From: Octopus sinensis
Taxonomy: Eukaryota
DNA: 64,000 nucleotides
Reading direction: 5' to 3'
Assembly: GCF_006345805.1 (NCBI RefSeq)
Contig: NC_042999.1
Coordinates: forward strand, 148,366,001 to 148,430,000
Below the pieces are notes generated by a model. It was not told where the DNA came from and searched no databases. It saw only the letters and a program-made list of their open reading frames with translations. Position 1 is the first letter of the stretch, and each line of letters opens with the position of its first letter. Below, piece by piece: positions 4,445 through 28,600 of the stretch. The translations under genes and the position numbers were made by a program.

Positions 4445-4869
4445 TAAGAACAAACTTGTAGTGAATTGTCCCCTTGTAATTCCACCAGACATAAATCATC
4501 AACTTGTGTTCAAAATGCCCTTGTTTGGTGAAGCTGTTTCAGAAGCTGGCCCTTGCTTAACACTGCCTCTGCCTTTTGGGATTGCAGGAAAATATCTCCC
4601 TTAGATTACTACGTGTTCTGATCCCTAACTCTCTTCTTGTGCTTGCGATGCTTCATCAATCAAGGAGAGATGGACACTTCAGTGAAGGAGTCCTTCACCT
4701 CAAAGGAGAAGAACTGGCATTAGTATGCGATCAAAGAACTGACAGGAAGGTGGCTTCAGACGATGCACCACAATGGTCCCTACTTTGAATGCTCGGCTGC
4801 TTTTGTTGTAACTAGATGAATAAAGCAAATATGTTACCAAAATGTTGCAAAACTTTTGACACACCACAG
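4445..4869 (-). mobile_element. Decayed, internally deleted mariner fragment with one terminus
   Basis: Minus-strand KLMIYVWWNYKGTIHYKF matches the mariner K.ML.VWW...G.I.YE motif; TA at 4870-4871 next to a TIR-like end. Confidence 0.55.
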
Positions 4870-5372
4870 TATGTATTTTTATTCATATATACATAATTGA
4901 CAAGTGCGTTATGATGAGATTTTGGGTAGAGGAAACCATGGGAAGGCCTAATATATGTGTATGTATATTTGTTGAGTTGCGTCACTTTTTGTTATTGATA
5001 TATCTGACTAAACATTATTGAAAGTAGTGAGTCAGCATGGTCACAGTCCAATGACTGAAACCAGTGAAAGAATAGAGACTTACTTTTTGCAGTGCAAGGA
5101 GACAGTAGAAATGTAGCTGGAACCTCATTTGAAACAGCAAGGCACTTTTATTTTTGTCACACAATAGGAACCTTCAACTAACAGCTGTTGCAATATTTTG
5201 CATCACTTATATGCTGATGTGAGTTTGCATACAAGTGATGTGACAAACAGCTGGGTTTACTTATATATTAATGTATACACATTACTAGATATAATACCAC
5301 AATTTATACATATCTTGAATAATTATTTTATGTTGAATGTATTATTTTCTTTCAAATCTCTTCTCTTTTTAG

Positions 5373-5564
<192 letters not shown>

Positions 5565-7811
5565 TAATGTTTATTTATTGATATTGCTTTCAATTAATCA
5601 TACATTATCTCATCTCTTTGAGGTTTCAATGATGTGATTGTTTACTTTTAGAATGACATTGTAGGGTAAGTGTGAGAAGCTGGATCTAGCTAGTTTGAAC
5701 ATAAAGCAGGTAAAATATTTTGGCCAGATATCATCATCATCATTTAGCATCCGTTGTCCATGCTGGCATGGTTTGGACGGTTTAACTGGGCTGGCATGCT
5801 GGAAGACTGCATCAGACTCCAGTCTGATTTGGCATGGTTTTCTACAGCTGGATACCCTTCCTAATACAAACCACTCTGAGAGTGCAATGGGTGCTTTTAT
5901 GTGCCACCAGCACAGGTGCCATTTGTGTGACACTGGATGCATTTAAATGGCCGGTTTAAATAATTAAAGAAATGTGGCATGACTTTACCATTTGATAATT
6001 AAAACCAGTGACAAAAGACAAAAGTGATGGTGCATGGCCTAATGGTTAAGGTATTGCACTCACAATCACAAGATTGCGATTTCAATTACCAGATCAGGTG
6101 GTGCATTGTGTTCTCGAGCAAAACACTTTGTTTCCCATTGCTCCAGTCCACTCAGCTGTAAGCAAATAACCTTGCGATGGACTGGCATCCCATTCTGGGA
6201 ATATGTTGTGATCTTGGTTCCTTATGGGTTTTGCAAACATTGTAAGCAACCTTGTGAGTCCTAGGACTCGAGAAGTAATGTCTGATGGTTGATGATAATG
6301 AAAAGACAAAACTAAAGCGATACTTGTTGTTATGGTTATCAGATTTACATCTTCATCGACAGTGCCACTGGATTGATAGAGCTACAGTATTGTTTGTCCT
6401 TTTTTGATATCAACTCACCTGATATGGTCGTAGGATACAATCTACTTGTTTTAAAGTGATCAAAATTAAATCCATTGAAACTTAATTTTTTCCAAATACA
6501 AGCTTCGCAATGATAAATAAATTTTTCTTAATTCCTTATTTTCAAAATTAATTGAAGGGCAATATAGTTCAACAGTAGTACAATAACAAAAGGGTTTAAT
6601 GAGCGTGATCGTTGCCAACTGGCTTCCGTACCCGTGGCACGTAAAAGGGCACCATTCGAGCGTGATCGTTACCAACGTTGCTTCACTGGCACGTGTAAAA
6701 AAATTCGAGCGAGGTCATTGCCAGTACCGCCTGACTGGCCCCGTGCAGGTGGCACATAAAAAGCACCCACTACACTCTCGGAGTGGTTGGCATTAGGAAA
6801 TGCATCCAGCTGTAGAAACTCTGCCAGATCAAGACTGGAGCCTGGTGCAGCCATCTGGTTGCCAGCCCTCAGTCAAAACCGTCCAACCCATGCTAGCATG
6901 GAAAACGGACGTTAAATGATGATGACTGTAAATTTCTCTTATAAATTGAAATCAATTTTGTTAGGCGATATGATATGCTTGAGAAGACCTGTTGAGTCAA
7001 GTAAAACCAAAATCGTATCTGTGGTCACTTCCCCCTGACTGGCCCCCATTCTAGTGGCATGTAAAATGCATCATCCAAACATGGTCGATGCCAATGTCCC
7101 CTGACTGACTCCCATGCTGGTGGTACATAAAGAGCACTATTCAAATGTGATTGATGACAGGCCCGTCTGACTGGCTCCTGTGCTGGTGGCACGTAAAAAG
7201 CCCCCAGAGTGGTTGGCGTTAGGAAGGGCATCCAGCTGTAGAAACATTGCCAGATCAGATTGGAGCCTGGTACAGCTGCTGGCTTTCCAGACCTCAGTCA
7301 AACCGTCCGGCCCATGTCAACATGGAAAACGGACGTTTAACAATAATGATGGCTTGTCCATATTCATGTTTTGTCTTAGATAAAGATATTTAATACTCAT
7401 TAACAAAGCTTTATGAAGGTAGCATGAGAAAGAAAGGATCAGCACTATATGATAGCAATACTACATCAAACAAATATTTCATTAGACTAGGTGCTGGAAT
7501 CAAATTATTCCATGAGCTAGGCAACAACAGCAGGAAACCAATTAAATATTTCTTTTTTTATTACAAGACTTAGAATTTTAGCAGTTTAAATCACTAATCA
7601 AGTTCACTAGACTTTTCTTTGCTTAAAATCTACGAAACCAAATAAAACCAAATAAAATTTTAAGTGATAAACCAAATAAAATTTTAAATATTTCAATGAT
7701 TATAAGATTTAGATATTGAGTTGTTTTTTTTTTTCTTTTGCATATATGTTTATTTGAATTTTGGTGTTATTTTTTTCAAATCATCATCTTTAATTTGTTT
7801 CAATGTATCAG

Positions 7812-7899
7812 ATTACAGAGTCTGAACTTAAACTTGTTAAAGAGACTGTTCTACAAAAAGCTGTTGATGGACTGAGATCAGAAGGAATGCCATTTGTAG
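7812..7899 (+). CDS. GART: GART exon: ITESELKLVKETVLQKAVDGLRSEGMPFV(G)
   Basis: Resembles the GARS helix ...TVLQ..VDG...EG.P; atcag| and |gtaagt; phase 0-1 keeps the frame with both neighbours. Confidence 0.92.
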
Positions 7900-7924
7900 G
7901 TAAGTAAATACCTGACAACTTACT

Positions 7925-8144
7925 CCCTGTAGCATTCAGATTATTCTGTCAAATGTAATAGTTATTGACATTGTTTTGAATATGTCATGCATTATCTCAT
8001 GGCTTTGAGATTTCAAGGATAACATTGTTTATTTTTAGATTGCTATCGTAGGGTAGGTGTGAGAAGCCAGATCTAGCCAATTTTAACATAAAACAGGTAG
8101 AATATTTAGTTAGGCTGGATATGGTCAGTTTAAATGCTAAAGGG
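7925..8144. mobile_element. piggyBac-type MITE, family 2; further copies at about 5534-5970, 12347-12554 and 46534-46690
   Basis: Termini ccctttagcatt / aatgctaaaggg|ttaa; shared interior tagcattcagatta.tctgtcaaat. Confidence 0.7.
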
Positions 8145-9938
8145 TTAATGTACCTTTTTGACAAAAAAAAATTAAAATCTTTATAATAGATTCATATTAG
8201 GTGAGAGCTTCTGTTACTTAGGAAACCTAATTAGCAACAATAAAAGGATATACTGAGAGCATAGCAGCCAGAATTAGAACATGGTGGAGAAAGTTTGGGG
8301 AACTATTATCCCTGATGATGAGATGTGGATTCTCTTTCCAGTCTATGAACTATGGTGCTGCTTAGTAGTGAAAGAACTGAAAGAAAAACTTGGTAAAAGA
8401 GGAAGCATCTGTGATGTGCAAGGGTGATGGCTATGCTAGTATGGACATGTAATAATGGGTGAAGAAGTGCTAGGAGATTCATGTAGAAAGATAGTAGAAG
8501 AGGAAGACCAAGGAGGACGTGGGCAAATGTGAAGGCCATTCAGGAAGCTGAGCATCATAAACAAGAAAGAAAGACAAGTGGTAGGAGACTGTGGTGGAGG
8601 GACTCATCCCGCCCATGCAAGCATAGAAAATCAAAAAGAAAAAAAATGATGAAGAACATTTTTATGTACTGGATCAGTAACCCAAAGGTCTCGAGATCAA
8701 AACCTCTTTTTTACAGTATGACTTTTTCACTAAAATGAAAGCAACATGCCATTTTTGCCTGATTGACAATACCAAATACTCAATCTTGTTTTAAAAATTT
8801 CTTTTTAATTACTGACATCCTACACACTGATTAAATCAATGTGATGAGAATAGTAAAATATACCTTTTCTTTTTTTCTTAAGCTTATAAGTAAATGGATT
8901 TGGTTTGCTGGAGTTTACATGTACTTTATGTAACATGCATGTGATTTTCCTTCATCCGTGCATACATATGTACATAGGTTCATTTGTTTTACATCTATCT
9001 TTCTATATTAGCATTTGTTAAATAGTGACTTATTTTGAGGCAGCATTAGAGAGCAATTGGTAGACAATAAGGAATGTCAGCACACACATACACATTTGGG
9101 TTCTGTGCAGTTTCCATTTGCCAATTCCATTCACAGGACATTGGCTGGCTCAAGGCTATAGTAGGAACTATATAGTTTTATATTTTATCACACAGTGAGA
9201 CATATATATATCATTATTTAATGTCTTCCTTCCATGCTGACATGGGTTGGACGGTTTGACAGGAGCTGGCCAGGCACCATGAGCCTGCACCATGCTTTTG
9301 TGTCTGCTTTGACAGAGTTTTTATGGCTGGATGCCCTTCCTAACACCATCAACCCTACAGAGTAGGCTGAGTGCTTTTTACTTGGCACCTGCACAGGCAA
9401 GATCAGTTTTGGCGTGATTTTTACAGCTTGATACCCTTCTAAATGTCAGCTACCATGCAGTGACAATTTAGCTATCGCACCGTATATATATATATATCTA
9501 CACACACACACATATATAGATGTGTGTGTGTGTATATATATATATTTCCATGGGCTTAAAATTATAAAAAAAATTTTTGTTCACATAAACTTTTTAGTTT
9601 CATCCAGTATTGGGACCATTATCGTATATATATATATATATATGGCACATAAAAAGCACCATCTGAACATGGCCAATGCCAGCACTGCCTTGACTGGCTT
9701 CCATGCTGGTGGCACATAAAAAGCATCAACCAATCGTGGCCCGTTGCCAGCCTCCTCTGGGCCCCTGTGGTAGTGGCACGTAAAAAGCACCCACTACACT
9801 CATGGAGTGGTTGGCATTAGGAAGGACATCCAGGCATAGAAACACTGCCAGATCAGACTGGAGCCCGGTGCAGCTTCCTGGCTTCCCAGACCCTAGTCGA
9901 ACCGTCCAACCCATGCTAGCATGGAAAATGGACGTTAA

Positions 9939-10172
<234 letters not shown>

Positions 10173-11795
10173 TGAAATACTTTGATAAACTCCATTGTCA
10201 GTCACATATGTTCTAAAAGTGCTTCAAAGACATTTCTAAACTGTATCAGTGTATGTCAGATTTTTTTGCACTAATCACAAATCATAATAGGTTTAAATAT
10301 GAGTTTCTTATGAAATTATCTTTTACCATTTCATGTTACTTGTTTCGGTCATTAGACTGTGGCCATGCTAGAACACCACCTTGAAGAATTTAAGTCGAAC
10401 AAATTGACTTATAATCTTTTTGTAAATTCTGGTACTTATTCTGTCAATCTCTTTTGCCAAAACACTAAGTTACAGGGATGTAAACACACCAACTCTGGTT
10501 GTCCAGTGGTGGGAGACAACAATTTTCAAAAAGACACACATTCATATATATATATATTTTATATAAGCCAGTGCCGCCTCGACTGGCTTCCGTGCAGATA
10601 GCACGTAAAATGCACCATCCGAATCGTGGCCGAAGCCAGTGCCGCCTCGACTGGCTTCCATGCAGGTGGCACGTAAAATGCACCAATCCGACCGTGGCCG
10701 ATGCCAGCCTTGCCTGGCACCAGTGCAGGTGGCACGTAAAAAGCACCCACTACACTCACGGAGTGGTTGGCGTTAGCAAGGGCATTAAGCTGTAGAAACA
10801 TTGCCAGATAAGACCGGAGCCTGGTGCAGCCTTCTGGCTTCCCAGATCCCCGGTCGAACCGTCCAACCCATGCTAGCATGGAGAACGGACGTTAAACGAT
10901 GATGATGATGGATGATGATTTATATTGTGAAATTTGATTTAATACTAAATTGAATTTTTCCCTGTAAGTTTGGAGTTATACTCCCTTGTAGTGAAGCAAC
11001 TTGTTGCTAAACCCTTAGTTATAGTTATAATTATATATATATAAAAAAACTTTTTGTATGTTTTTACCGAATATGGTTCTTTTCCATACCAAAACTACTT
11101 GGTAAAATTTATTAATTATTAAATTAATAATCCTTTACCTATCTATCTATATATATATATATATTGGCCTGCTCGCTTAGCCAGCGGGGTGGCGTCATTC
11201 GAAGGCTAAAACAATGCGAACGCATTGTGACCAGCGATGTGTAGCAACATCTGATGGTCTGGTCGGTCACGTGATATATATAGAAGCCCATCATATATAT
11301 ATATATATATATATATGATGGGCTTCTTTCAGTTTCCATCTACCAGATCCACTCACAAGGCATTTGGTTGACCCAAATTAATAGTAGAAGACACTTGCCC
11401 AAGTTGTCATGTAGTAAGACTGGACCAGAAACCATGTGGTTGCGATGCAAACTTCTTTCCACACAGCTACACCTGTGCCTATATTCATATTTACTTTAGT
11501 GCTTAATGTTCAGACACAGTTTATGAGCTTGTGATGTACACTGGTGATGTGTGTTTGTGTGTGTATTGTATGTTTTTCCTTCCGAGCATAGGCTGGACGG
11601 AATTATTTGTGGCAGGAATTTACAGCCAGATGTGCTTCCTGTTGCCAACCCTTACCCAATTTTCAAATAAGGGGTACTTTTTGTTATTTTGTAGCTCTTA
11701 AAATCCACAGTGTAAACATTATATCATCGTTTCACCTAGATGGGATAAGCAAAGCCATAAAAGTTAAGTCCCACAATCATATACACATATAGGCA

Positions 11796-12182
11796 CAGGA
11801 GTTACTGTGTGGTAAGTAGCTTGCTTACCAACCACATGGTTCTGGGTTCAGTCCCACTGCGTGGCACCTTGGGCAAGTGTCTTCTGCTATAGCCTTGGGC
11901 TGACCAAAGCCTTGTGAGTGAATTTGGTAGACAGAAACTGAAAAAGAAGCCTGTTGTGTATATGTATGTATATATATGTGTGTGTGTGTGTGTTTGTCCC
12001 CCCCAACATCGCTTGACAGTTGATGCTGGTGTGTTTACGTCCCTGTCACTTAGCAGTTCAGCAAAAGAGACCGATAAAATAAGTACTAGGCTTACAAAGA
12101 ATAAGTCCTGGGGTCGATTTGCTCGGCTAAAGGTGGTGCTCCAGCATGGCTGCAGTCAAATTACTGAAACAAGTAAAAGAAA
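11796..12182 (+). mobile_element. tRNA-derived CORE-like SINE, full length
   Basis: A/B-box-like head, ccttgggcaagtgtcttct core, gactgaaacaagtaaaaga tail. Confidence 0.85.
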
Positions 12183-12621
12183 TATACAACAGGTTTCTGT
12201 ACAGTTTCTTCCTCCCAAATTCACTCACTTTTATAGCCTTAAGATACTTGTCTAAGGAGCCATGCTGAAGGACTGAACCTGAAACTATGTGGTTGTAGAG
12301 CAAGCAATCTTCTTACCCAAACAACCATCTGTATCTTCATATAAATATTTAAACCAGCCACATCTGGCCCAAATATTCTACCTGTTTTGTGTTCGAAATG
12401 GCTAGATTTGGCCTCTTGTGCCTACTCTCTAATGTCATTCTAAAAGTAAACATTCACATCATCAAAATCTTGAAGCTGACATAATACATCATTAATTCAA
12501 AATAATGTGAATAAATAAGCGTAGCATTTGACAGAGAAATCTGAATGCTATAGGGTTAAAAAACAAAACAATTAGTTATTTAAATTGAGATTGTTTTGAA
12601 AATGTTCTTCTATTTTTACAG

Positions 12622-12790
12622 TCCATCCTTCCTCTGCTCAAATCGGATCTTCTCACAGTCTGCACTGCCTGCGTCAACGGTACACTGCAACATACCATGC
12701 CAGAATTTGATTCAGTATCCAAAGTCCTTGGTGTTGTCGTCGTTAGTGGAGGCTATCCTGGTTCATATAAGAAAAATCTTCCACTCACAG
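12622..12790 (+). CDS. GART: GART exon: SILPLLKSDLLTVCTACVNGTLQHTMPEFDSVSKVLGVVVVSGGYPGSYKKNLPLT(G)
   Basis: ILPLLKSDL and S.GYPGSY motifs; tacag| and |gtaatg. Confidence 0.95.
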
Positions 12791-12991
12791 GTAATGCTCT
12801 TTTTTTTATTTTTTTTTTATTAACGACTTGTGTGGTGTGGATTCGAGTCCAGAGTCTGAATTACTATCCCATTGCAATTTCAAATGTCTGCATTGCTTTC
12901 AAGAGTCTACTCAAAGGCCTAATTATTCTCCCACTATGCAGTATAATTGTTATATGTGTCATACCTAGACCACATTTAGAATTATAGACTA

Positions 12992-13342
12992 CTAGCAGTA
13001 TCGCCCGGCGTTGCTCAGGTTTGTAAGGGAAATAACTATATAAGCATTTTTAGAGAGTTATAGCAAAAAAAAATTATGGTAAATTTTTTTTTAAATCGTT
13101 GACTCATCGTAGACATTTTTAGAGAGTTACTTCCCTTATATAATAGCGAAAAAATTCATTAAAATGGGAAAAAATGATGGTAAATTTTTTTTTTAATCGT
13201 AGACTCATCGTAGACGCGCACTAATACCCAGAAGGGCTCAATATGAATCACGACTATAAGGTTAAACTGCACCGCAAAATGTGGGAGTAAGGAATCTAAA
13301 TCGTAGGAGACAGACACACAACCTCTCTTTTATATATAAAGA
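12992..13342 (-). mobile_element. Non-autonomous Helitron-type element with an internal ~100 bp duplication
   Basis: On the minus strand it begins A|TC and ends CTAG|T, with a GC-rich subterminal hairpin (plus strand cccggcgttgctcagg). Confidence 0.75.
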
Positions 13343-13404
13343 TATTCAGTTTTTCTGTCTGATTGATAAATTCATTCAACAAATATACAAGGCATACTCT
13401 TAAC

Positions 13405-13654
13405 CAGTGGTTCTTAACTAGGGTCCAGATGACCTTTGTGAGTCTATTTAAGGTTTTGTTGTTAAAATTTATATGCAATAAATTGGTTATACTTTTACAA
13501 TGCACAAAATATTTTAACAATTTTGTGACATAATTCCTAATAATATTTAACTAAAAATGGTAGGATTTTTTAAACATAGAATAGCTATGAGGATCCAGTA
13601 AAGTAAAATAGAGATTAAGGAGGTCCGTAGGCAAAAAATGGTTGAGAACCACTG
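13405..13654. mobile_element. hAT (Charlie-like) MITE
   Basis: TIRs cagtggttcttaac / gttgagaaccactg; homologous to 34982-35211. Confidence 0.8.
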
Positions 13655-14453
13655 CCGTATACAGTTATTTGATTTACTAGAAATAGAATCCATATCTCCC
13701 TCAGACTGCACTCTATCATCATCATTTAATGGTTACGATCGATTAGTGCTTTTTTACGTCCCACCGGCACAGGTATCACAGCTACAATTTCCATTTTGAT
13801 TTTCATTTTGATGCTGATCTTACTTGACTCAATAGGTTTCCTCAAGCACAGCAGGTCGCCCTACAATCCAAGGTACTTTTGAATGGGCTGAGTCATAGGC
13901 AACGCCCTTGCACACCCCACCCCACCACCTTTTCAACTATCTTTCTATCTATTTTTTTCAACTCTGTCACTAATTCCTTCTCTCTGCTGTGTTCTCTGCC
14001 ATTCTCCTCCAGCCTCAACTCTGCCAAGGATCATTTTCCACTCTTCTGTTCTCTGTAGTAATAGGAGCCAATTTAGGGCCTTAAACTTACAATTTATGAA
14101 GCAATCAGACTCTGGTCGAACCATCCAACCCATGCTTGCATGGAAAACATATGTTAAACGATGATGATGGTGACTGACTCCAGTGAGCTCACCAAGTAAC
14201 TTACAAGACAAATCTGCTCAGGTGGGAGGGGATGTAGTATTGAGGGAGGTGGCTTTGTACCAGGTGATGAAAGGTTCGAGTATGGTAGACAAATAGATAT
14301 AACTGATGTCTTGCTGTTGGGAAAATACATGTTTATTTCATTTAGGAAAAAGGGAGATGATACGCTTTATGTCTGTTTTCATTTAAATATTACGTTTTTG
14401 CATTTGTTTTGCAAGATTCTTGATGTGGAATTGTGTGTTGAAACATATTTCAG

Positions 14454-14824
14454 GATGGTCTTTTTTTCTCTTTTTTTTTTATGCCAAATAAACACACACA
14501 CTATATACCCGTCCTTCACTTCAGCTTTATTATTGATTTTGTTTTGTCTGAAATCTTTTGTTACACGCCCTGTGACCTCTTCAGTGACTCTCCATCTCAA
14601 GTGTCTCTTCCTGTCCTGTTTAGTCCATTCTAAAAAAGACAGAATGGACTAAACAGGATAGGAGGAGACATGTGGGAAGGAGAGTCACTGAAGAGGTCAC
14701 AGGACATGTGACAAAAGATTTCAGAAAAATGGCACTAAAATAATAATAATAACAACAACAAAGTTGAAGTGAAGAATGAGTATATATACTGAATGTGTTT
14801 ATTTAACAAAAAAAAATGACCATC
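14454..14824. repeat. Foldback palindrome with an 85-bp core stem (14547-14631 / 14641-14725)
   Basis: Manual alignment: 76 of 85 positions complementary, 9-nt loop; looser outer arms. Confidence 0.9.
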
Positions 14825-14928
14825 AACAAAATAAAACAATAATCATTTAAATTGGAATCATTAAATTGGAATCAGTTTGACATTTCGGTAACAAAAAGGG
14901 TCATAAATTTTTTTATTTTTTTATTTAG

Positions 14929-15145
14929 GTCTTGAAGAAGCTGAGGCATCTGGAGTGACTGTTTTCCATGCTGGTACATCTCTCCAAGATGGACAGATAG
15001 TGACTTCAGGTGGTCGAGTTTTGGCAGTGGTAGCTAAAGAAAAAGATTTTCAGTCAGCTTCTGACAAAGCCCAGAAGGGGGCATCTTTGATTAAGTTCAC
15101 TGATGCATTTTATCGAAGGGATATTGGACACAAGATTCTTTCAAG
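14929..15145 (+). CDS. GART: GART exon, end of GARS domain: (G)LEEAEASGVTVFHAGT...TSGGRVLAVVA...FYRRDIGHKILS(R)
   Basis: VFHAGT, TSGGRVL and YRRDIG GARS C-domain motifs; tttag| and |gtaaat (phase 2). Confidence 0.96.
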
Positions 15146-15356
15146 GTAAATTGTCACTTCAGTGAATTTCTGATTTAACAGCTGCACTTTTGCTGCATCC
15201 ACCTATGATTGCAGCAACAACTACTACATAAACAAATATAAAGATAAAATTGTCTGAAGACCAGTTTTTTCCTATTAACATTTTTTTCTCTTTAATTTCT
15301 TTAGGTAAATAGATATTAATGTGAAAATCATACCTTTTTAAAATAGACTGATTGGA

Positions 15357-15362
15357 ATTAAA
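15357..15362 (+). terminator. Candidate intronic polyadenylation signal for a GARS-only transcript
   Basis: ATTAAA about 210 nt into the GARS/AIRS intron, followed by U-rich sequence; an AATAAA also occurs at 15829-15834. Confidence 0.35.
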
Positions 15363-16138
15363 TTTTTAATCAATATTCTACTGAATATTGGAAGAATAAG
15401 CATAATTTCATATGTATCCCTATGTAAGAGTTGAATTGACAGTCATAAGAGCATTTGACAAAATGTTTCATATTTGTTTTGCTTTTTTGCACTCTAAGTT
15501 CAAATCTCAGTGAGGTTAATTTTCTTTCATCCTATCAAGGTCTATAAAAAAATATACTGATCCAGCTTGATGGATTGCAAGAACTGTAAGAATGCTAGAC
15601 CAAATGCCTTTGTGGCTTTTAGCCTTTCCTAGAAACCTTTATGAAAGTAGTGGGGAGTGATTCTATCATTAGTGTATTATCATTAGTCTTTCTGTATTGT
15701 GTAAGTTCTTAATAGACTTAGTTGTCTCCTCTGGATTTGAAACCGCCTCCCTTGCAATGAATGTCTTGGAAAATCTTTTCGTTTTGTATCTCTTACTTAA
15801 TCCTACAAGAAAATAGTTAACTTAGAAAAATAAATTAATAATAATACAAAACAGTAATTACTGTACTATTAATTATGACCAGACTTCGAGGGAGAAATAT
15901 GAGGACTGTGTGGTTCTTGTTTCCAACCTAATTGTCATCATCATCATTGTCTAATGAATCGGGAAATTCAGCATAGCTTTTGTCTAAAGAGATATTTAGT
16001 TTTCTGATTCTCTTTGTTACATATATATTTTTATATAAGCATCTATTTAGTTCATTACATATACACATATCCACATATTTGTACAATAGCTTGTTTCATA
16101 TCCACACATCGCTTTAGTTTGTTGCATATATATAGACA

Positions 16139-16283
16139 CAGGAGTGGCTGTGTGGTAAGTAGCTTGCTCACCAACATCATGGTTCTGGGATTGGTCCCAC
16201 TGCATGGCACTTGGGCAAGTGTCTTCTACTATATCCTTGAGCTGACCAAAGCCTTGGTAGATGGAAACTGAAAGAAGGCCGTC

Positions 16284-16315
<32 letters not shown>

Positions 16316-16473
16316 CCCACTATCGCTTAACAACTGATGTTGGTGTGTTTATGTCCCCGTAACTTAGCGGCTCAGCAAAAGAGACTGATAGAATAAGTTC
16401 TGGGGTTGATTTGTTCGACTAAAGGCAGTGCTTCAGGATGGCCACAGTCAAATGACTGAAACAAATAAAAGAA
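16139..16473 (+). mobile_element. tRNA-derived CORE-like SINE; the Tc1 element starts at its tail
   Basis: Same family consensus; the tail's final TA doubles as the Tc1 TSD. Confidence 0.8.
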
Positions 16474-16475
16474 TA

Positions 16476-17484
16476 AAGGGGTTGGACAAAATAATGCAAA
16501 AACCTTAGAATTTCAAACAAATTTATTTTAATATTGGGTAGGACCACCTTTGGCAGTAATTACAGCTTGAATTCTACAAGGTATGGACTCATACAAAGTT
16601 TGAATTGTTTCCACAGGAATTTTTGTCCATTCATCAGCTAAAACAGTCTCCAGTTCTTGTAGCGATGATGGTGGAGGATATCAATTCCTTGTTTTTCTAA
16701 AATGTACCATAAATGTTCAATAATATCAAGATCTGGGGACTGTGGTGGCCAGATAAGATGTTTAACTTCACTAGAATATTCCTCGTACCATTCAGTAACA
16801 ACTTTAGCTGTGTTAATTGGTGCATTATCATCCTGAAAGATTGTTTCTCTCCGGAAACAGTTCTGCAACTTTATCATGAATTTGATCAGATAAAATGCTT
16901 AAATAGTCATGACTATTAATTCTGCCATGAAGGTAAACCATTGGGCCAGCAGATTTCCAGGATATAGCCCCCACCCCACACCCCAAGTAGTGGTTTTCTG
17001 ATTGCAGCCCTCCCATGAGCAGCTCCCAGTGAACAATTTTTTGTGGAAACTGGGTTCTCAAGGTGGTCATTAAGCTCTGCAGTAATTTTGGGAGCTGTAC
17101 TTTTGTGATCCTTTCTAACAATTCACATAAGAGTCTGACAGTCCCTATCTGAAAGTTTAGGTTTGTTTCAACGAGGAGGTTTTTTCCCTCTTTCTCAAAG
17201 GCTGTCATTACTATTGAGACAGTACTTTTGGCTGTTTTTGTTATGCTAGCGCCTGCCATAGAAGCACCAACAATTTGACCTTTTTGAAAGGCCGATAGAC
17301 ATGTCATTTTAATGAATTTTAATTACCTTTTTTTGATAATATCTGAAAAGAAACAGCAATTTTAGCAAAACACATTAAGCAACATTAATAATAAATCAAA
17401 AAACATAAAAACAAGCTTTTGATGGTTCTATAGATATTTAAAAATTATGATGCTAAGCGTTTCCATTATTTTGTCCAACCCCTC
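16476..17484 (-). mobile_element. Tc1-like DNA transposon, internally deleted, both TIRs present
   Basis: TIRs (a/g)aggggttggacaaaataatg(c/g)aa, each flanked by TA; ORFs MTCLSAFQKGQIVGA... and FQDDNAP...WPPQSPDLDIIEHLW (DD34E C-terminal half). Confidence 0.92.
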
Positions 17485-19772
17485 TATATATACATACACA
17501 TGCATGTGCGTATATATGCTGGTGCTTTTGAAGATTGTAGGAGGTTTGGAGTAAAGTTTTTATTGTCTTCCAGTTTTTCCATATATTGATCATATTAAGC
17601 ATTCACATCATATTAGACATTGTAAACACCTTGAGACAGAAAATGAGATTCTTGTTGTGAGACTTGTCAGTAGGCCTGTTAAACTCTTCCATTGTCAAAT
17701 TGATTCATATAATGTATAATATCATGTACATTAAAATCTTCACTGCCAGTTTGCATGTGTGTGTGTGTGTGTGTGTGTGCATGCTTTTAACTTTCTAATC
17801 ACTGATTTTTCTCATTCACATAAATTAGAATGTTTTATCTTCTATTTTCATATTCGACATCACTAGACGTTATGCTTTTAAGAAAGTTGTATTGTTTCTA
17901 CGTTGTTTTAACATCGCTTTGTCCATGATGCAGAGAAATGCCATCATTCTCCTTTACCACATGTCACTTCACCTGTAAAACACATTTCCAAACCTGACCT
18001 GAACATCTTTTTTTTCTCTCTCTCATGTCATTAGTCTTCTTTTGTCATGGATACATTCTTCTCTTAATGCATGTTATTCAAAGTAGTTTTCACATTATAC
18101 TTGCATATCCAAATCATTTGTATCCTATCTGTGATCCAGTAATTCTAGTTGCAAAATATGAAGTTATGATCTGATAAAATTATGACAAATCTATTATTGA
18201 TTGTTCATCGGCATTCTTTTCTCTCCATTGTTTGTCTGTTATGTAACCTACCCGCTAAAACTGCACATGCTTTGGTCTCGATCACAGGTAGCAAAGGATA
18301 TTAGTTATCTGTATTTAGTATTTTTATTTCAATATTCTCCCAATGTCCCTTACTTCATTGAGTGAATGCACACCCAACAATTCTTGCATAATAAGGTTAT
18401 TTAGGTACTTGTGAATGAATTCATACATAACTAGAAGTATGATATAGTGCATGTATAAAATGAAAATTTATAGTTCATTAAAATATTACATAAAGTGAAA
18501 AATACTGACAATGACTGCTTGAAATTCCAAATCATTTCATCACTAGATACATCTATTTCTTTGTGAACAACTTCATTGACAAAAAAAAATCGCCATAAGT
18601 TCATAGTAAATTAGGAGCAAATAAATTTCTGTATTAAAAGAATATTGTCTTTGTTTTCTTTTTCTTTGATTATCTAATATAATAAATGCAAAAACTAATT
18701 TCTGTGTGTCAGTGTGTCACACTTAGATCCCCCTCTCTCACTATTCAATGACACTCCTATTATTCCTCATGATGGGGTGAGAGTAATAGTAGGCATAGAG
18801 ATAGTGAGGGTGGTGATAAAGACAGGCAGATAGAGAGAGAAAGCGAGACAAAGAAATTTAGGGAGAGTTGATGCTTTATTAAAAGTAGTAGTGTTGATGG
18901 TGGCAGTGGGAGTAATAAAAGAGAAAGAAAGAGGGAGATGATGTACAACTTTGTTTAACCATGTCTGTTTGACAGAAATTTCTGTCACCAACATACTGAA
19001 CACTATCATTTTTGTTTTATTTTTTGCTTTCTTTAATACATGCACATACACACATGTACATATACATCATCATCATCATAATCGTTTAATGTCTGCTTTC
19101 CATGTTAGCATGGGTTGGACAATCTGACTGAAGATTGGCAAACCAGATGGATGCCCTCCCTAACACCAACCACTCCGAGAGTGTAATGGGTGCTTTTACG
19201 TACCACCGGCACGAGGGCCAGTCAGGCTATACTGGCAACAGCCACGCTCAAAGGGTGTTTTTTACGTGCCACTTGCACAGGAGCCAGTCCAGCGGCACTG
19301 GCAACAACCTCACTCTTTTTTTTTTTCACGTGCCAAATACACTTTAATTGAAAGAAGGTTTCTCCAAAATTAAACATATCAAATATAATAAATGAGAATG
19401 TCAGTGTATCACACTTTTTCAACTTTAATAAATCCTTTCTACTGGAAGCACATGGCCTCAAATTTTGGGGGAAGAGATTAAGTCGATTCTATCGACCCCA
19501 GTTCGTAACTGGTACTAATTTTTATCGACCCTGAAAGGATGAAAGGCAAAGACAACCTCGATAGAATTCAAACACAAAATCTAACGGCAGATGAAATACT
19601 GCTAAGCATTTTGCCCAGCATGCTAACAATTCTGCCAGCTCACCACCTTAATATGATAATAATAATATGATAAATGTAAATGTCAGTGTGTCACACTTTT
19701 TCAACTTTACTCCTAAAGGCCGTAGCCCAACATATCATACCATCTATGGTATGATATGTCAGGCTGACTCCT

Positions 19773-20178
19773 CTCTTTTACTCTTTTACTTGTTTCAGTC
19801 ATTTGACTGCGGCCATGCTGGAGCACCGCCTTTAGTCGAGCAACTCGACCCCGGGACTTATTCTTTTTGTAAGCCCAGTACTTATTCTATCGGTCTCTTT
19901 TTGCCGAACCGCTAAGTGACGGGGACGTAAACACACCAGCATCGGTTGTCAAGCAATGCTAGGGGAACAAACACAGACACACAAACACACACACATACAT
20001 ATATATATATACATATATACGACAGGCTTCTTTCAGTTTCTGTCTACCAAATCCACTCACAAGGCATTGGTCGGCCCGGAGCTATAGCAGAAGACACTTG
20101 CCCAAGACGCCACGCAGTGGGATTGAACCCGGAACCATGTGGTTGGTTAGCAAGCTACTTACCACACAGCCACTCCTG
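19773..20178 (-). mobile_element. tRNA-derived CORE-like SINE, young full-length copy
   Basis: Same family; many CpGs retained. Confidence 0.85.
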
Positions 20179-20186
20179 CGCCGTTT

Positions 20187-20640
20187 ACTCTGTGAGTAAA
20201 TGAAAAACATTCCAGGCCGAATCCAGACCCCACAATCCTGAAGTTTTGGATTCCCAAGTTTTCATTACTGTGATTGTTTTCAGTGATTTTCTTTTTTTGG
20301 GGACTTTTTGCAACAAATTTTTTTGTATGATAACTATTTTCATAATCTAAAAACTAACTCTGTGAGTAAATTAAAGACAATCCGGACCTGCAATCCTGAA
20401 ATTTTGGATTCCCAAGTTTTCATTACTGTCATTGTTTTCAGGGATTTTTTTTTACATGACTTTTTGCAACAAATCTTTTTTTGTATGATGATAATTTTTT
20501 AAATCTAAAGGCAAACTCTGTGAGTAAATTAAAAACATTCCAGGTCGAATCTGAACCTGCAATCCTGAAATTTTGGATTCCCAAGTTTTTGTTACTGTGA
20601 TTGTTTTTGGCGATTTGTTTTACATGATTTTTTTGCGATG
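20187..20640. repeat. Tandem repeat of 158-170 bp, about 2.8 units
   Basis: actctgtgagtaaat recurs at 20187, 20357 and 20515; caatcctgaa.ttttggattcccaagtttt in each unit. Confidence 0.9.
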
Positions 20641-20890
20641 AATATGATCATCATTAGGAAATTACTCTGGAGGAAGCAATTGCAACAAATTCTCCAAAAC
20701 AGATCTTTGCAGATCTTCCCATTCAGGGTCAGTTGCTCAAAAACTATATACTAGCTAATGTTATATATGTGTGTGCATATTTAATATATTTCAGAGTTAA
20801 AGGCCTTTGAACTACCTTCACACCTACATTCCATTATGTTATTGAGACATAACTGAAACTTCATCTTTATTCACTGGGATACATCGGAAT

Positions 20891-21274
20891 AATGGAGGTG
20901 CAATGGCCCAGTGGTTAGGGCAGCGGACTCGCGGTCGTAGGATCGCGGTTTCGATTCCCAGACCGGGCGTTGTGAGTGTTTATTGAGCGAAAACACCTAA
21001 AGCTCCTTGAGGCTCCGGCAGGGGATGGTGGTGATCCCTGCTGTACTCTTTCACCACAAATTTCTCTCACTCTTTCTTCCTGTTTCTGTTGTACCTGTAT
21101 TTCAAAGGGCCGGCCTTGTCACTCTCTGTGTCATGCTGAATATCCCCGAGAACTACGTTAAGGGTACACGTGTCTGTGGAGTGCTCAGCCACTTACACGT
21201 TAATTTCACGAGCAGGCTGTTCCGTTGATCGGATCAACCGGAACCCTTGTCGTCGGAACAGACGGAGTGCTTCC
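20891..21274 (+). mobile_element. tRNA-derived SINE (head H1, tail T1)
   Basis: A box tggcccagtgg, B box ggtttcgattccc; perfect 10-bp TSD acatcggaat (20881-20890 and 21275-21284). Confidence 0.9.
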
Positions 21275-21351
21275 ACATCGGAATGGTTTTTACCGTTTCC
21301 AGGCTAGTTGGTAGAATTCATCACTATAATCTAACAAACCTAACTATTTAA

Positions 21352-21573
21352 CCTTTTTGTTACTGTATTTATTTTGAGATGCTCTGTGTTTCTTTCAATT
21401 ACTTTAAAATATAACAAAGAATTTAGTAAAATAACTTAGTTATCATTCAGCCAGTGTTGGGAACATAATTTTGTGATTAAGGTTTGGTGGAAGATTTTAA
21501 TTCGAAACTTATGAAAACAAGACATTTGTACTCAGAGCCGGAGCCGGTTTCAGCTGGGTTGGTAACGAAAGGG
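21352..21573. mobile_element. piggyBac-type MITE, family 1
   Basis: TTAA on both sides; TIR cct(t)ttcgttac / gtaacgaaaggg; homologous to 25387-25606. Confidence 0.8.
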
Positions 21574-24468
21574 TTAAAGTACAATATGTCAGCTATTTAT
21601 AACTGGTACTCTGTCCATTACGATGATGAGGATTCTAGTTGATCCAGTCTATGGAACATCCTACTCGTGAAATTAACGTACAAGTGGCTGAGCACTACAC
21701 ACACACACGCACACACATACATGTACTTTTAATGTAGTTCTCAGAGAAATTCAGCGTGACACAGAATATCACAAGGCTGGCTCTTTGTGAATTACAGTTA
21801 AAACCTGTTTTTTGCCAGCTGAGTGGACTGGAGCAATGTGAAATAAAGTATCTTCTTCAAGGACAACAACACGTGACCAGGAATCAATACTTCCTTGTAC
21901 AGCTGACCTTATGGGGCCAACAAGAGTTTAGTAACTTCTTTTTTTTTTTAGTGCAATGCAGATGACTGAATGCAAATTATCAATTTAGAAGCCAACTTGT
22001 TGATTCAGCTGCTATTTTTGAACTTTTTAAAAACGTAAAACATTTGGCATCCGAGAGTATTGTAGTTCACTTGAAGCATTGTGTATTGTTTGTAAAATAT
22101 GTGTCTTGAATGGCACAACAATAGACTATAATAACTGTTATAATTTAATTATCCATAGTCTAATATAATAGTATTTCAGAATATAAAAATTCCTTCAGAT
22201 ATTGCTAGGAATTGTTCGAGTCAATTTCAGTGGAGGGAGCAAGTTGATTACATCGACCCTTGTACCCAACTGACACCTAGTTTATCAACCCGGAAAGGAT
22301 GAAATGCAAAGTCATCTTTGGTGAAATCTCAACTTGGAACTTAAAAATGGACGAAATGCCACTAAACATTTTGTCCGGTGTGCTAACGATTCTGCCAGTT
22401 CCACTTTAATATTAGTAATATAACGAGGGAAATATAGTCCATTGTTGTTATTATAGGGCATTGTTGTGCCATTCAAGACACATTATATTTTATTTTGACA
22501 TCCATTTTTGCATTGAAAATGCTGGAGTGTAAAAGTAGTTGGTGCTGCCAATGGAAGAGATGGGTATCAGAAGACTTAGCAAGTTCAAAAAGGAATTCAG
22601 ACCTAAAAACTGGATTTTGCAAGGTCTGTCATTAAGGAGTTTACTTTGCAACCACGTGGTTTCAGGTTCAGTCCCTTTATGTGGCACCTTGGGCAAGTGT
22701 CTTCTACTACAATCCTGAATTAACTAACGCCTTGTGAGTGAATTCAGTTGATGGAAACTATAGGAAGCCTGTGATGTGTATGTGTGTTGCATGCACCTAT
22801 AGTTTTGTACCTGGATGTTGACATCTGGTTTTACTTGAGTGAAACAGTAATACATTTACATTCCTTGTTGACATTATAACTGGTTGCTCTGCACCTTTCA
22901 AAGATTTGCGGCATACGAAATCCTTTACTTGAAAGACAGTTAAAGGTTGATAACAGAAAGAGCATCCACCTGTAAAAACCTGCCTCAAATACACTCCCAT
23001 TTAAACCTTCAAACCATGCTAGCATAAAAAAGCAGGTATTGAACAAATGAACGTGAAGAATAATGATGTACTGTTTTAAAGATTTGTCTAACTCATTCAT
23101 ACCAGTGTAGAAAAATTATAAAAGAATAAACTGACAATTTACATTGGGTAGATTTGAAAATTCAAATATTCTACTTGAAGTGTTTAAATTGCTTTAAAGT
23201 TCAATATTTGTGTAAATTTCAATTACTCTGCTCTGAAATTGAAAAGGCTACCGAGTTTTCTCAGTTAGGTGAGATAAGATGAGTAAAATAATGTTTCTTG
23301 CTTGTGAAAACATCAAGAGATAGGATTTCATAACTGTCAAGTTTTCAAACCAATATTATTTGAAAATATTCAAACTTTGGAAAATTTGGTACAGTTGGCC
23401 ATTATATTGCAATCATTTTCAAAATTGTTTAAAATTTTCATATAATGCAACAAGCTTGTTTTTGTAATGCTTCATATAATGATATATATATATATTATAT
23501 TAACCACATAATATTAATTTATATTAATAATGTGTGTCATGTTTTTTTGTTTTTTTTTTAATTAAGTAAACATTGATTTCTTTCTTCATTAGCATCTGTA
23601 TAGAAAATGATGTAAAACAACATAAGGAAGGATGTTTCAACTTGAAAAAGCAAAGCCTTTTTTTTGTTTTTTGTGGTTGTTTTCAATACTAAGATAATTT
23701 GAATAATAGCGATTTTATTTGTATCTTAGAACAGAACTCATTGACACAGATCTTTCAGCAGTGAATTGAAGATTTTCCCTTTAGTATATTACTGAGACTG
23801 AATATGTTTTCTCTATTGACAATAATATTATTAATTGCTAAGTTTTAACTTGTAATCCATAAGGCCCTTTGGTTATACCTTAACTGGAGAAGGCAAAAAG
23901 AGACCATTCATGTGGTCTTTCTACTCTTTTAAGTTTTGTGATATGAACAGATATGCTGTACAGACATTTTTGCCAAGGATTTGCTGATCACTGTCAATGG
24001 TATGATTTATATTATTTGTTGGCAATGAATGGTTGCTCTGTGCTTTTGAAGAACCATAGAATACAAAAGTACCCCTTGATAAAACACTTGAAGTTTGGTG
24101 TCAGGAATGCCTTGAATAAGTCTCTTCCATCCCGTATTAGTGTTGAAAAGCAAATATTAAATAAGTTTTTCCCCAGTAATAAACATGTCTTGTGTTGAAT
24201 TCTTGTAAGTATGCAAATCTGGAAATATTAGGATAATTTTGATTTATATTTCATGGGATCATAAACTTGGACATTATTTTTAATCATGAAGGTGCACTGT
24301 AGATTGGGCCTTTTGCTGCCATGAGCCTAAAAACTATATACTTGTTTAGAATGAATAATATGTGCAAGCATTGTATTACTCTGCCTTTCCTTTCACTATA
24401 AAAACATATTTCTCAGAAGTTTTTTTAATGAAGAAGCTTAAAGGTTAAAACACATTGTTACGTTTCAG

Positions 24469-24694
24469 GGGTGTCCAGAACTTTAATAGTCTGTCCTATA
24501 AAGCAGCTGGTGTTGATATTACTGCTGGAAATTCTCTTGTTGAGTTAATCAAGCCGTTGGCTAAGGCTACCCAAAGGGAAGGCTGTGAAGCTGCATTGGG
24601 CTCCTTTGGTGCTATATTCAACCTACATCAAGCAAAGTACACAGAGGAACCTTTACTTGTGTCAGGTACAGATGGTGTTGGGACAAAGCTCAAG
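24469..24694 (+). CDS. GART: GART exon, start of AIRS (PurM) domain: ...[27 protein letters not shown]...[13 protein letters not shown]
   Basis: YKAAGVDI and [10 protein letters not shown] PurM motifs; ttcag| and |gtatgt. Confidence 0.97.
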
Positions 24695-25386
24695 GTATGT
24701 CTACTTGCTTATTATTTAAAAAAAAATTTGTACTTTTTCCTGCAAGTGAATTTCAAATGGCATTGGAGATATTACGAGTAGCATTGCAAAAGAACTAGAA
24801 GTTGTAATTTGGTTAGTGTTGACATATTTAATGTACTGGGCATGACAACTCTAACTCACAATACTTATGTTGTGAAGCAAAGACATTCATTCAATGTCTA
24901 ATAGTATTAGCAAATCAGAGCTAGAATTCTGAACATGTTTTGATTTTATTAAAATGCTTCAGTGAACCTTAGACATCACCATACTTGTTAAAATATTAAT
25001 GTGTGAATCACGAGTTGCATATACAATATTGTACATGCAAAGGGCTAAAAAAATTTGCATATTTCAAAAGAAAATTGAGATTAGCTTTAAAATGTTAATC
25101 CTAGCTTAACTCTTGGTTTTCATGCTTATGGTGTTTTTGAGTAATTAACCTCAGTGGGTAGGATTTCTTTCTTTTTTTCTTTTTTTTTTTTTTTTTTTTT
25201 AGGAATATAGATCTGCTGTAGCCTTGAAATTTGTATTTCTACCAAGCAGTATGTGCACATGAGTTTTATACATATGTATACATTTAACTTTGTGTAAATA
25301 GACAACATGGTAAGATAACAAAGTCCTCTCAATGGAATCTAAGCAAAGGAGACTTTATAAACAACTTTAGGTCCAACACTCTTTAA

Positions 25387-25606
25387 TCCTTTCGTTACTG
25401 TATTTATCTTGAGATGCTCTGTGTTTCTTTCAGTTACTTTAAATATAAGAAAGAATTTAGTAAAATAACTCAGTTATCATTAAGCTAGTGTCAGGAACAT
25501 GAATTGTGACTAAGGTTTGGTGGAAGATTTTAATTGAAAACTTATGAAAACAAGACATTTGTATTCAGAACCAGAGCCGGTTTCAGCCAGGTTGGTAACG
25601 AAAGGG
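25387..25606. mobile_element. piggyBac-type MITE, family 1, second copy
   Basis: TTAA TSD at 25383-25386 and 25607-25610; same internal sequence as 21352-21573. Confidence 0.8.
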
Positions 25607-28600
25607 TTAAACACACAGTTTAAGATTTAATATGATGCTCAAAAAAAGATTAGCATCTATTGTTAGTAATGTAATGGGAGATGTAAATCTATCCATGGCA
25701 TCCTCCACTCATGTAAATACATCATAAAGTGGAATGAGATCAGTTTACATCAATTTCAAACTTTCAGTGGGTGCAGCCATCATTACTAGATGGCTATTTT
25801 AAGTAGGGCTAGTTTCAGTCCTTTTTTTTCAGAAGCTGAATTGCTTCAATGTACAATATTTATTTGAGAGACAAACTAAGCAGCTACTTATTGGAACAAA
25901 TTCATGTTGTGTGCAGATTGTGATGCTGAACCATTTCACCATCATCATCATTTAACGTCCGCTCTCCATGCTGGCATGGGTTGAACGGTTTGACAGGGAG
26001 CTGTCCAGACTCCACCTGCCTGTTGTAACATGGTTTCTATGGCTGAATGCCCTTTCTAACACCAACCACTTAACAGTTTACGCAACATCATCATCATCAT
26101 CATTTAACATCCGCTTTCCATGCTAGCATGGGTTGGACGATTTTGACTGAGGGCTGGCAAACCAGATGGCTGCACCAGGCTCCAGTCTTGATATGGCAGA
26201 GTTTCTACAGCTAGATACCCTGCCTAACACCAACCACTCTGAGAGTGTACTGGGTGCTTTTTACGTGCCACCGGCACAAGGGCCAGTGAAGCGACGTTGG
26301 TAACGATCACGCTCGAATGATGCCCTTTTACGTGCCATGGGTACGGAAGCCAGTTGGCTGCTCTGGCAACGATCACGCTCGGATTGTGTTCTTGGCAGGT
26401 GCTTTTTAAGTGGCACCAGTACCTGAAAGGACAAGCTTGTATGTGTGGAAGACTGATTTTACTTAGCTTAATGTGGCTTATCCTGTACAGCAAATCACCA
26501 ATCTCCCAGTCCCACGTCTGCATACTTAAATGTCACAGTCATGGTATTGGACACATCAAAAATTCAAGTGATCCACTCCATACTGGAAGAGTGCAAGGAA
26601 ATAAAGGGAGTATGCATTAATCAGAAGATGGAAGGTTAGGTCAATGTTGGTCAGTAGCTTCTGTTTACTGGACTGAGAACCTAGTTATGGGTTCAAACTG
26701 GAGCTCTGGGTGGAGAAAATCTTGGGAGCAGTCATGAACATGGTGACCAGTCTCACTCAAAACTAGGTTGAAAACAAGCTGCCCTTGAAATATTGGACAG
26801 AAGTGGTTAACACCTACCACATGGCTGTCATGCTTTGTCCCACAAATCCTCTGGCCACCCCAGAATGTCTGGTCTTTCATTTCTTGTTGAAGAGACAGTT
26901 TTTGCTAGTTGAGGGATCCTTCTGCTGCTAACAAAGGCTGTGCAATCATAGGATCCTGTAGCTGATGATTCACAGTCTCTTACTGAGGCTGACATTGCTG
27001 CAGAGATTCCTGAATGATGGTGAATAGATGTCGTCTCCCGTTTATGCATCATATCACTCTGTAACTCCTCTCTTTGACCAAAGTACAAAGCAAAGTTTAG
27101 TGTTTGGCACCTGACATGTTGCCTGACACTCACTGCACTCTACTAGCTAAGCAGCATAGACGGGTCTTGGTGTTTGATCCCTTGTTGCAACCCATTGTCA
27201 TTTGGCGCAGACAAAATCATCGTCGTGTTGATATGGTTTTTACATATGAATTACCCTTCCTGTTACTAACTGGGTTAGTGGACTGAGTGCAGTTTATCAT
27301 GCCACCAGTGCTAGAGATGTTACCTACAGCAAAACTAAAGAATTCCTGCTTCCCTATCTTATTTGGAATTACTGCTCCCCCACTTCCTAGAAGAATTGCT
27401 TGTAGTGCAGTAATTGACAAAATCAGCACCGTTTGCTAATTGCACATTTCAAATAACATTCTTTGGCGTTAGGAAGGGTATCCAGCTGTAGAAACTCTGC
27501 CAGATCAAGATTGAAGCCTGGTTCGCCAGCTCTCAGTCAAATTGTCTAACCCATGCTAGCGTAGAAAGTGGACGTTAAACGATGATGATGATGATGATTC
27601 TTCATTCATAAATAATCTGTATGACTGTTTTCCTAATATTACTGAATTTTGCTGTTTAATACCTTAATATATTTGGGCTTGTGAGTGCTGGTGCCATGTA
27701 AAAAACACCTGTGTTGGTGTCATGTAAGAAGCACCCATTTAAGGCCATGTAAAACCACTCCTGCCATAAAAAGCACCCATGCTGATGCCTTATAAAGTGG
27801 TTGGTATTAAGAAGGGCATGCCAAAACAGACAATTTGAGCTTGAGCAGTTGGCCAGCTCTTATCAAACCATCCAACCCATGCCAGCATGGAAAAACAGAC
27901 ATTGAATGATGATTATATTCACTCCACTCTGTCTCAAAAAAACCCCCATTAGTTCTAATTCTTAATCCATTTGGTTTGTAGACCATGATTTAGACTCATT
28001 GGTTGATATTCACTACAATCTTAAACATGGTTGTGGCTATCTTCTGACCTCAGTTGCTAAATTATTGTAGCCATCCTCAATGACAGAGATGCTGTGACTA
28101 TTTACTAATCACAGAAACAGTCACTATGCCTATTTACTGACCACAAACTGGAGCCTGGTGCAGGTCTCCAGCTCACCAGTTCTGGTCAAACCATCTAACC
28201 AATGCCAGCATAGAAAACAGATGCTAACTGATGATGAATTGCAAAGTTATTGTGCAGGCACTTGAGCCCCGTGCTAGTAGGGTGCTAAGAGCACCATCCA
28301 AGTGTGATCGTTGCCAGAGTGACTAACTGGCTTCTGTGCCGGTAGCATGTAAAAGGCACCATTCAAGCGTAATCGTTACCAGCATTGCCTTACTGGCACC
28401 CGTGCCGGTGGCATGTGTAAAGAGATTCGAACAAGGTGGTTGCCAGTACCGCCTAACTGGCCCCCATGCCGGTGGCATGTAAAAAGCATCCACTACACTC
28501 TTGGAGTGGTTGGTGTTAGGAAGGGCATCCAGCTGTAGAAACCTTGCCAGATCAGATTAGAGCCTGGTGCAGCCTCCCAGCTTGTCAGTCTTCAGTCAAA

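Follow-up and report, generated by a model that had tools for sequence, protein, structure and literature searches.

The window analyzed in this study, a stretch of 64,000 nt from the genome of Octopus sinensis, contains the GART gene, which encodes the trifunctional protein GARS-AIRS-GARTfase. The concatenated exons have XP_029633902 (P0146) as their top match in protein searches, and the Pfam domains GARS_N/A/C, AIRS, AIRS_C and Formyl_trans_N found in O. sinensis GART show the host gene to be the fused form. By exact spliced peptide mapping, residues 140-1004 of XP_029633902 are encoded in the window with 0 mismatches, and the 5' exons are located upstream, outside the window. The coding part within it consists of 17 exons and 16 introns with a single GT-AG solution for each junction, and the intron phases are, in order, 0,0,0,1,0,1,2,0,1,1,0,1,1,0,1,0. 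The features around the boundary between the GARS and AIRS domains are listed here, with a slash in sequences marking the exon-intron junction.

1052..47984, + strand: coding exons of O. sinensis GART, residues 140-1004; exact match to XP_029633902, with an AG acceptor preceding 1052
14929..15145, + strand: last GARS exon, residues 357-429, ending ...DIGHKILS + AG; Pfam GARS_C E=2e-22, profile positions 28-92 of 92
15146..15151, + strand: 5' donor GTAAAT of the phase-2 intron, without G at +5; TAA at 15147-15149 in frame after AGG
15146..24468, + strand: boundary intron GARS/AIRS, phase 2, 9323 nt, intron 7 of the window
24469..24694, + strand: first AIRS exon, whose initial G completes AG/G = Arg429; by spliced mapping

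The boundary intron follows directly after residue 429, and the GARS_C profile ends within the exon preceding it. A sequence-only reading of this DNA had described it as the longest of the 16 introns and the only one in phase 2, placed at the domain boundary, and this is confirmed by exact spliced mapping, the other 15 introns being in phase 0 or 1. Intron positions and phases of GART are kept from Lingula to Octopus, and the boundary intron is an ancient phase-2 intron separating the GARS and AIRS domains of animal GART. Its orthology to the intron used by human, mouse and Drosophila to produce GARS alone is supported.

Kan & Moran reportedly found in 1995 that polyadenylation in intron 11 of human and mouse GART gives rise to a monofunctional GARS (cited in PMC11297038, summarized in PMC8291708), and Henikoff et al. 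are said to have described in 1983 an alternatively processed transcript of Drosophila Gart (ade3; cited in PMC11297038). The passages on GART in PMC8291708 state that polyadenylation of the GARS transcript relies on a signal within the intron that separates the last GARS exon from the first AIRS exon, and that a TAA inside the boundary donor is combined with an intronic poly(A) signal in human, mouse and Drosophila. Both GART proteoforms were detected by native proteomics in human, as reported in PMC11297038. What the sequence-only reading had given as established, a monofunctional GARS made by intronic polyadenylation in Drosophila, mouse and human, matches the statements in these two sources. 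The function of monofunctional GARS and the reason for the conserved animal layout are presented in the same passages of PMC8291708 as open questions. For human, mouse and Drosophila the layout was thus known from publications, and its occurrence in a cephalopod is what is new here.

No other intron of the gene is as long as the boundary intron in any of the five cephalopods compared, where it measures between 3.9 kb (Argonauta) and 24 kb (Acanthosepion); it is of unremarkable size (368-447 nt) in Pecten, Lottia and Lingula. Interspersed repeats that have further copies in the window make up about 25% of the O. sinensis boundary intron. A SINE-like interspersed repeat is distributed across introns and flanks on both strands, its segments each matching around 30-40 other places of the window. 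Argonauta introns contain it as well, and it explains all but one of the intronic matches between Octopus and Argonauta.

595-745, 6760-6916, 7171-7390, 9784-9942, 10609-10899, 19057-19335, 28327-28841, 36746-36932, 53705-53905, 57949-58113, 59392-59554: examples of the SINE-like repeat

A short tandem unit at 20198-20639 in the boundary intron matches two places of the cuttlefish intron with ~80% identity (E down to 3e-30), probably as a repeat family common to both and not as orthologous conservation. The fly Gart gene has a nested cuticle-protein gene in an intron; in contrast, the search for nested coding sequence that is conserved gave nothing in the octopus boundary intron. A nested gene is opposed by the 0 matches from tblastx of the Octopus against the Argonauta boundary intron, and by the lack of a Pfam match for a 159-aa ATG-initiated ORF located on the minus strand at 16828-17307.

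Elsewhere in the gene, RefSeq isoform X3 of O. sinensis is one Gln short (VVKQ versus VVKQQ) at the donor of intron 12 (37360-37368), which fits a 3-nt alternative splice choice. An ATTAAA at 48090-48095, with a T-rich tract behind it, lies 106 nt past the stop codon of GART and is likely the terminal poly(A) signal of the full-length GART mRNA. Just past the 3' end of the gene, a non-LTR retrotransposon ORF (Pfam RVT_1, E=2e-30) occupies 48822-50746 on the + strand.

The in-frame stop and the donor-proximal hexamers

The sequence at 15140-15149 is ttcaag/gtaa, and reading on in the exon frame gives ...DIGHKILSR followed by a stop, with AGG at 15144-15146 and TAA at 15147-15149. The observation on which the sequence-only reading was built, a last GARS exon ending in AG/GTAA and a read-through of AGG TAA, is correct at 15144-15149. 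The AG/GTAA is common to the boundary donors of O. sinensis, O. vulgaris, O. bimaculoides, Argonauta and Acanthosepion, and the donors of these five cephalopods are weak, being GTAAAT in the octopods and GTAATT in the cuttlefish. In a phase-2 intron the G of the donor occupies codon position 3, and therefore GTAA and GTGA donors always produce NNG followed by TAA or TGA. GTAA donors are found in 10 of the 16 introns in the window, and introns 1, 4 and 9 likewise terminate within two codons.

A second phase-2 intron of GART, located after residue ~139 just upstream of the window, served as the control. Annotated proteins were mapped on the loci of O. vulgaris, O. bimaculoides, Argonauta hians, Pecten maximus, Lottia gigantea and Lingula anatina.

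L004 17377-19184: control phase-2 intron, by mapping of annotated proteins
L003 12583-13215: control phase-2 intron, by the same mapping
L001 5811-7213: control phase-2 intron, by the same mapping

The control intron has an immediate in-frame stop in all six species. In the same loci the boundary intron stops immediately in four of six, with Pecten (GTCAGT) and Lottia (GTATAC) stopping two codons later. The caveat attached to the sequence-only reading, that any phase-2 GTAA donor makes such a stop, is fully borne out by the control. The TAA in the donor as evidence for a switch is ruled out by the control intron and by the frequency of GTAA among the donors; a stop within a phase-2 donor is, by itself, not diagnostic of a switch. 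If the switch is not confirmed, this will be a useful caution, as such a stop says nothing by itself.

These stops favor an explanation without any switch. The boundary intron would then be constitutively spliced, the stop would be an automatic by-product of the phase-2 GTAA donor, transcripts reading into the intron would be pre-mRNA or retained-intron RNA that is degraded or untranslated, and the conserved 76-nt block described below would have another role, for instance in the regulation of splicing or the binding of a transcription factor. The background density of hexamers, their absence from the Lottia and Lingula boundary introns and the failure to find a cephalopod GARS-only ORF in protein collections and annotations, all detailed below, are on the same side. 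Three observations oppose it: the read-through tail is at most two codons in every genomic lineage examined; GARS-only products occur widely among animals, one of them in a mollusc-like transcript; and the sole single-copy conserved intronic block of the gene is built like a poly(A) site in the sense direction and recurs in cuttlefish. On balance we regard the absence of a switch as possible but somewhat unlikely.

The sequence-only reading had also pointed to two hexamers downstream of the donor, and both are present.

15357..15362, + strand: ATTAAA, +212 from the donor, weak candidate poly(A) signal; presence, with counterparts in octopods
15829..15834, + strand: AATAAA, +684 from the donor; presence only

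A total of 21 A(A/T)TAAA hexamers were counted in the boundary intron, where 18 are expected from base composition and 27 are found on the antisense strand, so that hexamer enrichment was rejected. Their density is 2.25/kb, with 0-3.46/kb in the other introns (1.48/kb pooled). Polyadenylation at ATTAAA 15357 or AATAAA 15829, leaving a short 3' UTR of 0.2-0.7 kb, is favored by the occurrence of ATTAAA at +206 to +220 from the donor in all four octopods (+206 in Argonauta), inside the best donor-proximal collinear match of the 16 introns. This match is the best score in banded local alignment of the first 600 nt between Octopus and Argonauta; however, 11 of 200 shuffles reach the score (p ~0.05), and intron 14 scores about as well. 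Hexamers aligning with AATAAA 15829 were found in O. vulgaris (+692) and O. bimaculoides (+638) but not in Argonauta, and the cuttlefish boundary intron has no hexamer before +539. Neither hexamer has a U/GU-rich tract downstream of it. Extra constraint near the donor was not detected either, the first 300 nt of O. sinensis being 96.5% identical to those of O. bimaculoides, within the range of other introns. Polyadenylation at these two sites is improbable on this evidence, and their role as poly(A) sites in the sequence-only reading is not upheld. The evidence cited earlier, the TAA donor and the hexamers, is non-discriminating, with nothing above chance as a signal.

The alignment of this intron in other molluscs, suggested together with that reading, gave a mixed outcome: the ATTAAA near the donor recurs in the four octopods, but not at a comparable place in cuttlefish, and Lottia has no hexamer at all. 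No A(A/T)TAAA was found in the boundary introns of Lottia and Lingula, and therefore the switch would not be universal in lophotrochozoans; if ancestral, it would not have been uniformly kept there. The deep bilaterian conservation that had been inferred is already noted in the literature, and it is too simple a description, as the conservation is not uniform.

A single-copy conserved block in the boundary intron

The 16 orthologous intron pairs of O. sinensis and Argonauta were compared with an HSP threshold of E<1e-4. Thirty of the 31 intronic HSPs belong to interspersed repeats, recur 6-39 times elsewhere in the window, and were rejected as candidate elements. The only single-copy HSP, with 0 other copies in the window, is located inside the boundary intron.

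18596..18671, + strand: single-copy conserved block, sense, poly(A)-site-like; 76 nt, 75% identity to Argonauta, E 1e-7
18620..18625, + strand: AATAAA, proposed intronic poly(A) signal; kept in Octopus (3 species), Argonauta (L001 16238) and Acanthosepion (L002 38181)
18647..18669, + strand: GTCTTTGTTTTC then TTTTTCTTTG, proposed GU/U-rich downstream element; 12-mer shared exactly with Argonauta

The block reads ...TTCATAGTAAATTAGGAGCAAATAAATTTCTGTATTAAAAGAATATTGTCTTTGTTTTCTTTTTCTTTG... A standard metazoan cleavage and polyadenylation site consists of AAUAAA, a spacer of 20-30 nt and a GU/U-rich tract, with cleavage usually 10-30 nt past the hexamer. The 12-mer GTCTTTGTTTTC is identical in Octopus and Argonauta and located exactly 21 nt past AATAAA in both. 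The cuttlefish was kept as a test lineage and was not used to derive the conserved core. Its 89.7-kb locus contains exactly one copy of the 11-mer GTCTTTGTTTT, in sense orientation, in the orthologous intron and 30 nt past an AATAAA. Across the five cephalopod loci (305 kb, both strands) this 11-mer occurs once per locus, always in sense orientation in the boundary intron and 21-30 nt past AATAAA. Either core 11-mer preceded by a hexamer was obtained in 30 of 5000 dinucleotide shuffles of the cuttlefish intron. An nhmmer search of the cuttlefish intron with the octopod block gave no match below E 0.1, because the spacing differs by ~10 nt; the site was found via the exact 11-mer.

A structured RNA, either miRNA or snoRNA, was rejected as the identity of the block, which forms no hairpin (MFE -9.5 kcal/mol, z ~0), and no Rfam match was found in the window. 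The block is not accompanied by conserved coding sequence either. From its sequence anatomy we infer that the module at 18596-18671 may be a poly(A) site in use, although it could be another kind of conserved intronic element. Given the usual spacing of 10-30 nt, cleavage would be expected at ~18638-18646. Octopus poly(A) sites are reported to carry the canonical A(A/U)UAAA in 71% of cases. The site at 18620, ~3.5 kb into the intron, is a better candidate than the donor-proximal hexamers, and the proposal gives an exact falsifiable coordinate near 18640. Public poly(A)-anchored long reads (FLAM-seq/Iso-Seq) from 18 O. vulgaris tissues, mapped to the O. sinensis genome (GCF_006345805.1), are described by Zolotarov et al. 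2022 (PMC9699675) under GSE192550 and PRJNA791920.

GARS-only products and the proposed switch

The match to Pfam GARS_C reaches the final profile position within the last GARS exon of octopus, and in alignments the column of the read-through stop is the end of stand-alone metagenomic PurD proteins and of Sycon GARS. The read-through product would therefore be a complete GARS of natural length. Any transcript that does not use the boundary donor encodes exactly residues 1-429, with no junk tail. In the calcareous sponge Sycon ciliatum (L006 10001-15903), GARS is encoded by a separate gene of 430 aa that has its own TAG stop at this column, and no AIRS or GARTfase exons were found within 10 kb downstream. 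The stand-alone PurD and Sycon proteins are like the octopus read-through product in their end column but come from separate genes, and the Sycon TAG is a real stop, not a donor.

A search with a 287-aa GARS query retrieved many proteins of ~430 aa, including RefSeq short isoforms in mammals, birds, a caecilian, fishes, Lepidoptera and an ant, as well as ORFs from transcript assemblies. The assembly ORF P0050 is 73% identical to Aplysia GART, so that its source would be a heterobranch-like mollusc, and in its contig the donor is read through as AAA AGG TGA. In P0046 the sequence AG/GTCAGT... is read to a stop four codons on. The chelicerate-like ORF P0040 runs on into non-donor (non-GT) sequence with an AATAAA 15 nt before the contig end, an ending that seems to indicate an alternative terminal exon.

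The last of these ORFs bears on a further explanation, in which exon 10 would be spliced to a small alternative terminal exon within the octopus boundary intron, with a candidate acceptor TTCATAG located 18 nt upstream of AATAAA 18620. Such splicing has precedents in the chelicerate-like contig L010, where the GARS ORF takes this course and ends near AATAAA, and in the Lepidoptera, whose short isoforms diverge from the long ones in a manner that direct read-through does not explain; the TTCATAG is also kept between Octopus and Argonauta. It is opposed by the poor pyrimidine tract before the AG, by the lack of an AG at this place in cuttlefish, and by the encoded tails, which by sequence reading would differ between Octopus (SKLGANKFLY, then stop) and Argonauta (RK, then stop). 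We consider an alternative terminal exon in octopus highly improbable.

No cephalopod GARS-only protein was found by homology search; the best match to the 287-aa query is just 64% identical, and therefore no cephalopod is among the GARS-only results. Exact look-up of seven predicted cephalopod GARS-only products (three Octopus species, Argonauta and a sepiid) in ~15 billion sequences found 0. The annotated GART proteins in RefSeq of O. sinensis and O. bimaculoides and in the O. vulgaris models are all full length. In cuttlefish (sepiid)-like RNA assemblies the full-length ORF is present on at least 15 contigs and the short ORF is absent. These cephalopod negatives are weak, because splice branches interrupt De Bruijn contigs, and read-through ends are seldom modeled in annotation pipelines.

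We propose that coleoid cephalopods may produce a GARS-only mRNA by intronic polyadenylation of the composite-terminal-exon type. In this type, a large intron with a weak donor is either spliced or cleaved at an intronic AAUAAA and U-rich site, the two processes being in competition, as in the secreted/membrane switch of immunoglobulin mu. Octopus GART resembles this type in having its longest intron behind a donor without G at +5. The weak donor GTAAAT and the longest intron of the gene would give time for the cleavage machinery. Cleavage would take place near 18640 at the conserved site, which is composed of AAUAAA 18620, a spacer of ~21 nt and GUCUUUGUUUUC with a U-rich tract. The predicted mRNA consists of the GARS reading frame of 1.29 kb followed by ~3.5 kb of 3' UTR (~0.9 kb in Argonauta). 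An intron-derived 3' UTR of 3.5 kb is long, which counts against the proposal. The locus is shown to be competent for such a switch, in that the donor is weak, the intron very long, the stop immediate and the domain complete, and it contains a conserved sense poly(A)-site-like element. A GARS-only mRNA arising in octopus by intronic polyadenylation near 18640 is plausible, and on these sequence features we would give it about an even chance.

The octopus locus is similar to human and mouse GART in that a trifunctional gene has an intron with TAA in its donor between the last GARS and first AIRS exons. The short product would end at the same residue position, as ...ILSR in octopus against ...QQPR in mammals. 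The poly(A) site, mRNA and protein have been demonstrated in mammals, whereas the octopus site is a sequence candidate ~3.5 kb into a 9.3-kb intron. Drosophila Gart (ade3) likewise has TAA in the donor, and the fly is a protostome precedent for the switch. The claim of the sequence-only reading that the same switch exists in a cephalopod is upheld as regards the orthologous intron, the complete GARS and the conserved poly(A)-like module; the TAA and the two named hexamers fall away as evidence, and no cephalopod GARS-only transcript or protein was found. The cephalopod interpretation is thus partly supported, for reasons other than those first given.

A further reading joins these features into one history. 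The TAA in the donor would be the fossil stop of a once separate purD/GARS gene, the boundary intron a former intergenic spacer, and the module of AAUAAA + GUCUUUGUUUU a descendant of the poly(A) site of that GARS gene. The GARS-only mRNA would then be the ancestral gene still expressed inside the fusion, with its site kept in coleoids since the octopod/decapodiform split. The read-through stop at the exact column where stand-alone PurD and Sycon GARS end is a point in its favor, yet we hold this history to be speculative and clearly unlikely.

If intronic polyadenylation near 18640 is confirmed, the cephalopods would add a third major bilaterian lineage with the switch, and they would provide a conserved cis-element whose exact position is known and which is open to mutation. 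Lottia and Lingula, with no canonical signal in an intron of about 400 nt, would by comparison show where the switch was kept or lost.

The GART proteins also differ in length between animal groups (P0150-P0230). Those of heterobranch gastropods, Diptera and Lepidoptera have ~1350-1390 aa, and those of cephalopods, bivalves and other gastropods ~1000 aa, so that dipteran GART is longer than the cephalopod form. The greater dipteran length presumably reflects a duplicated AIRS domain, and the distribution suggests such a duplication in each of the long-protein lineages, one of them within Mollusca.
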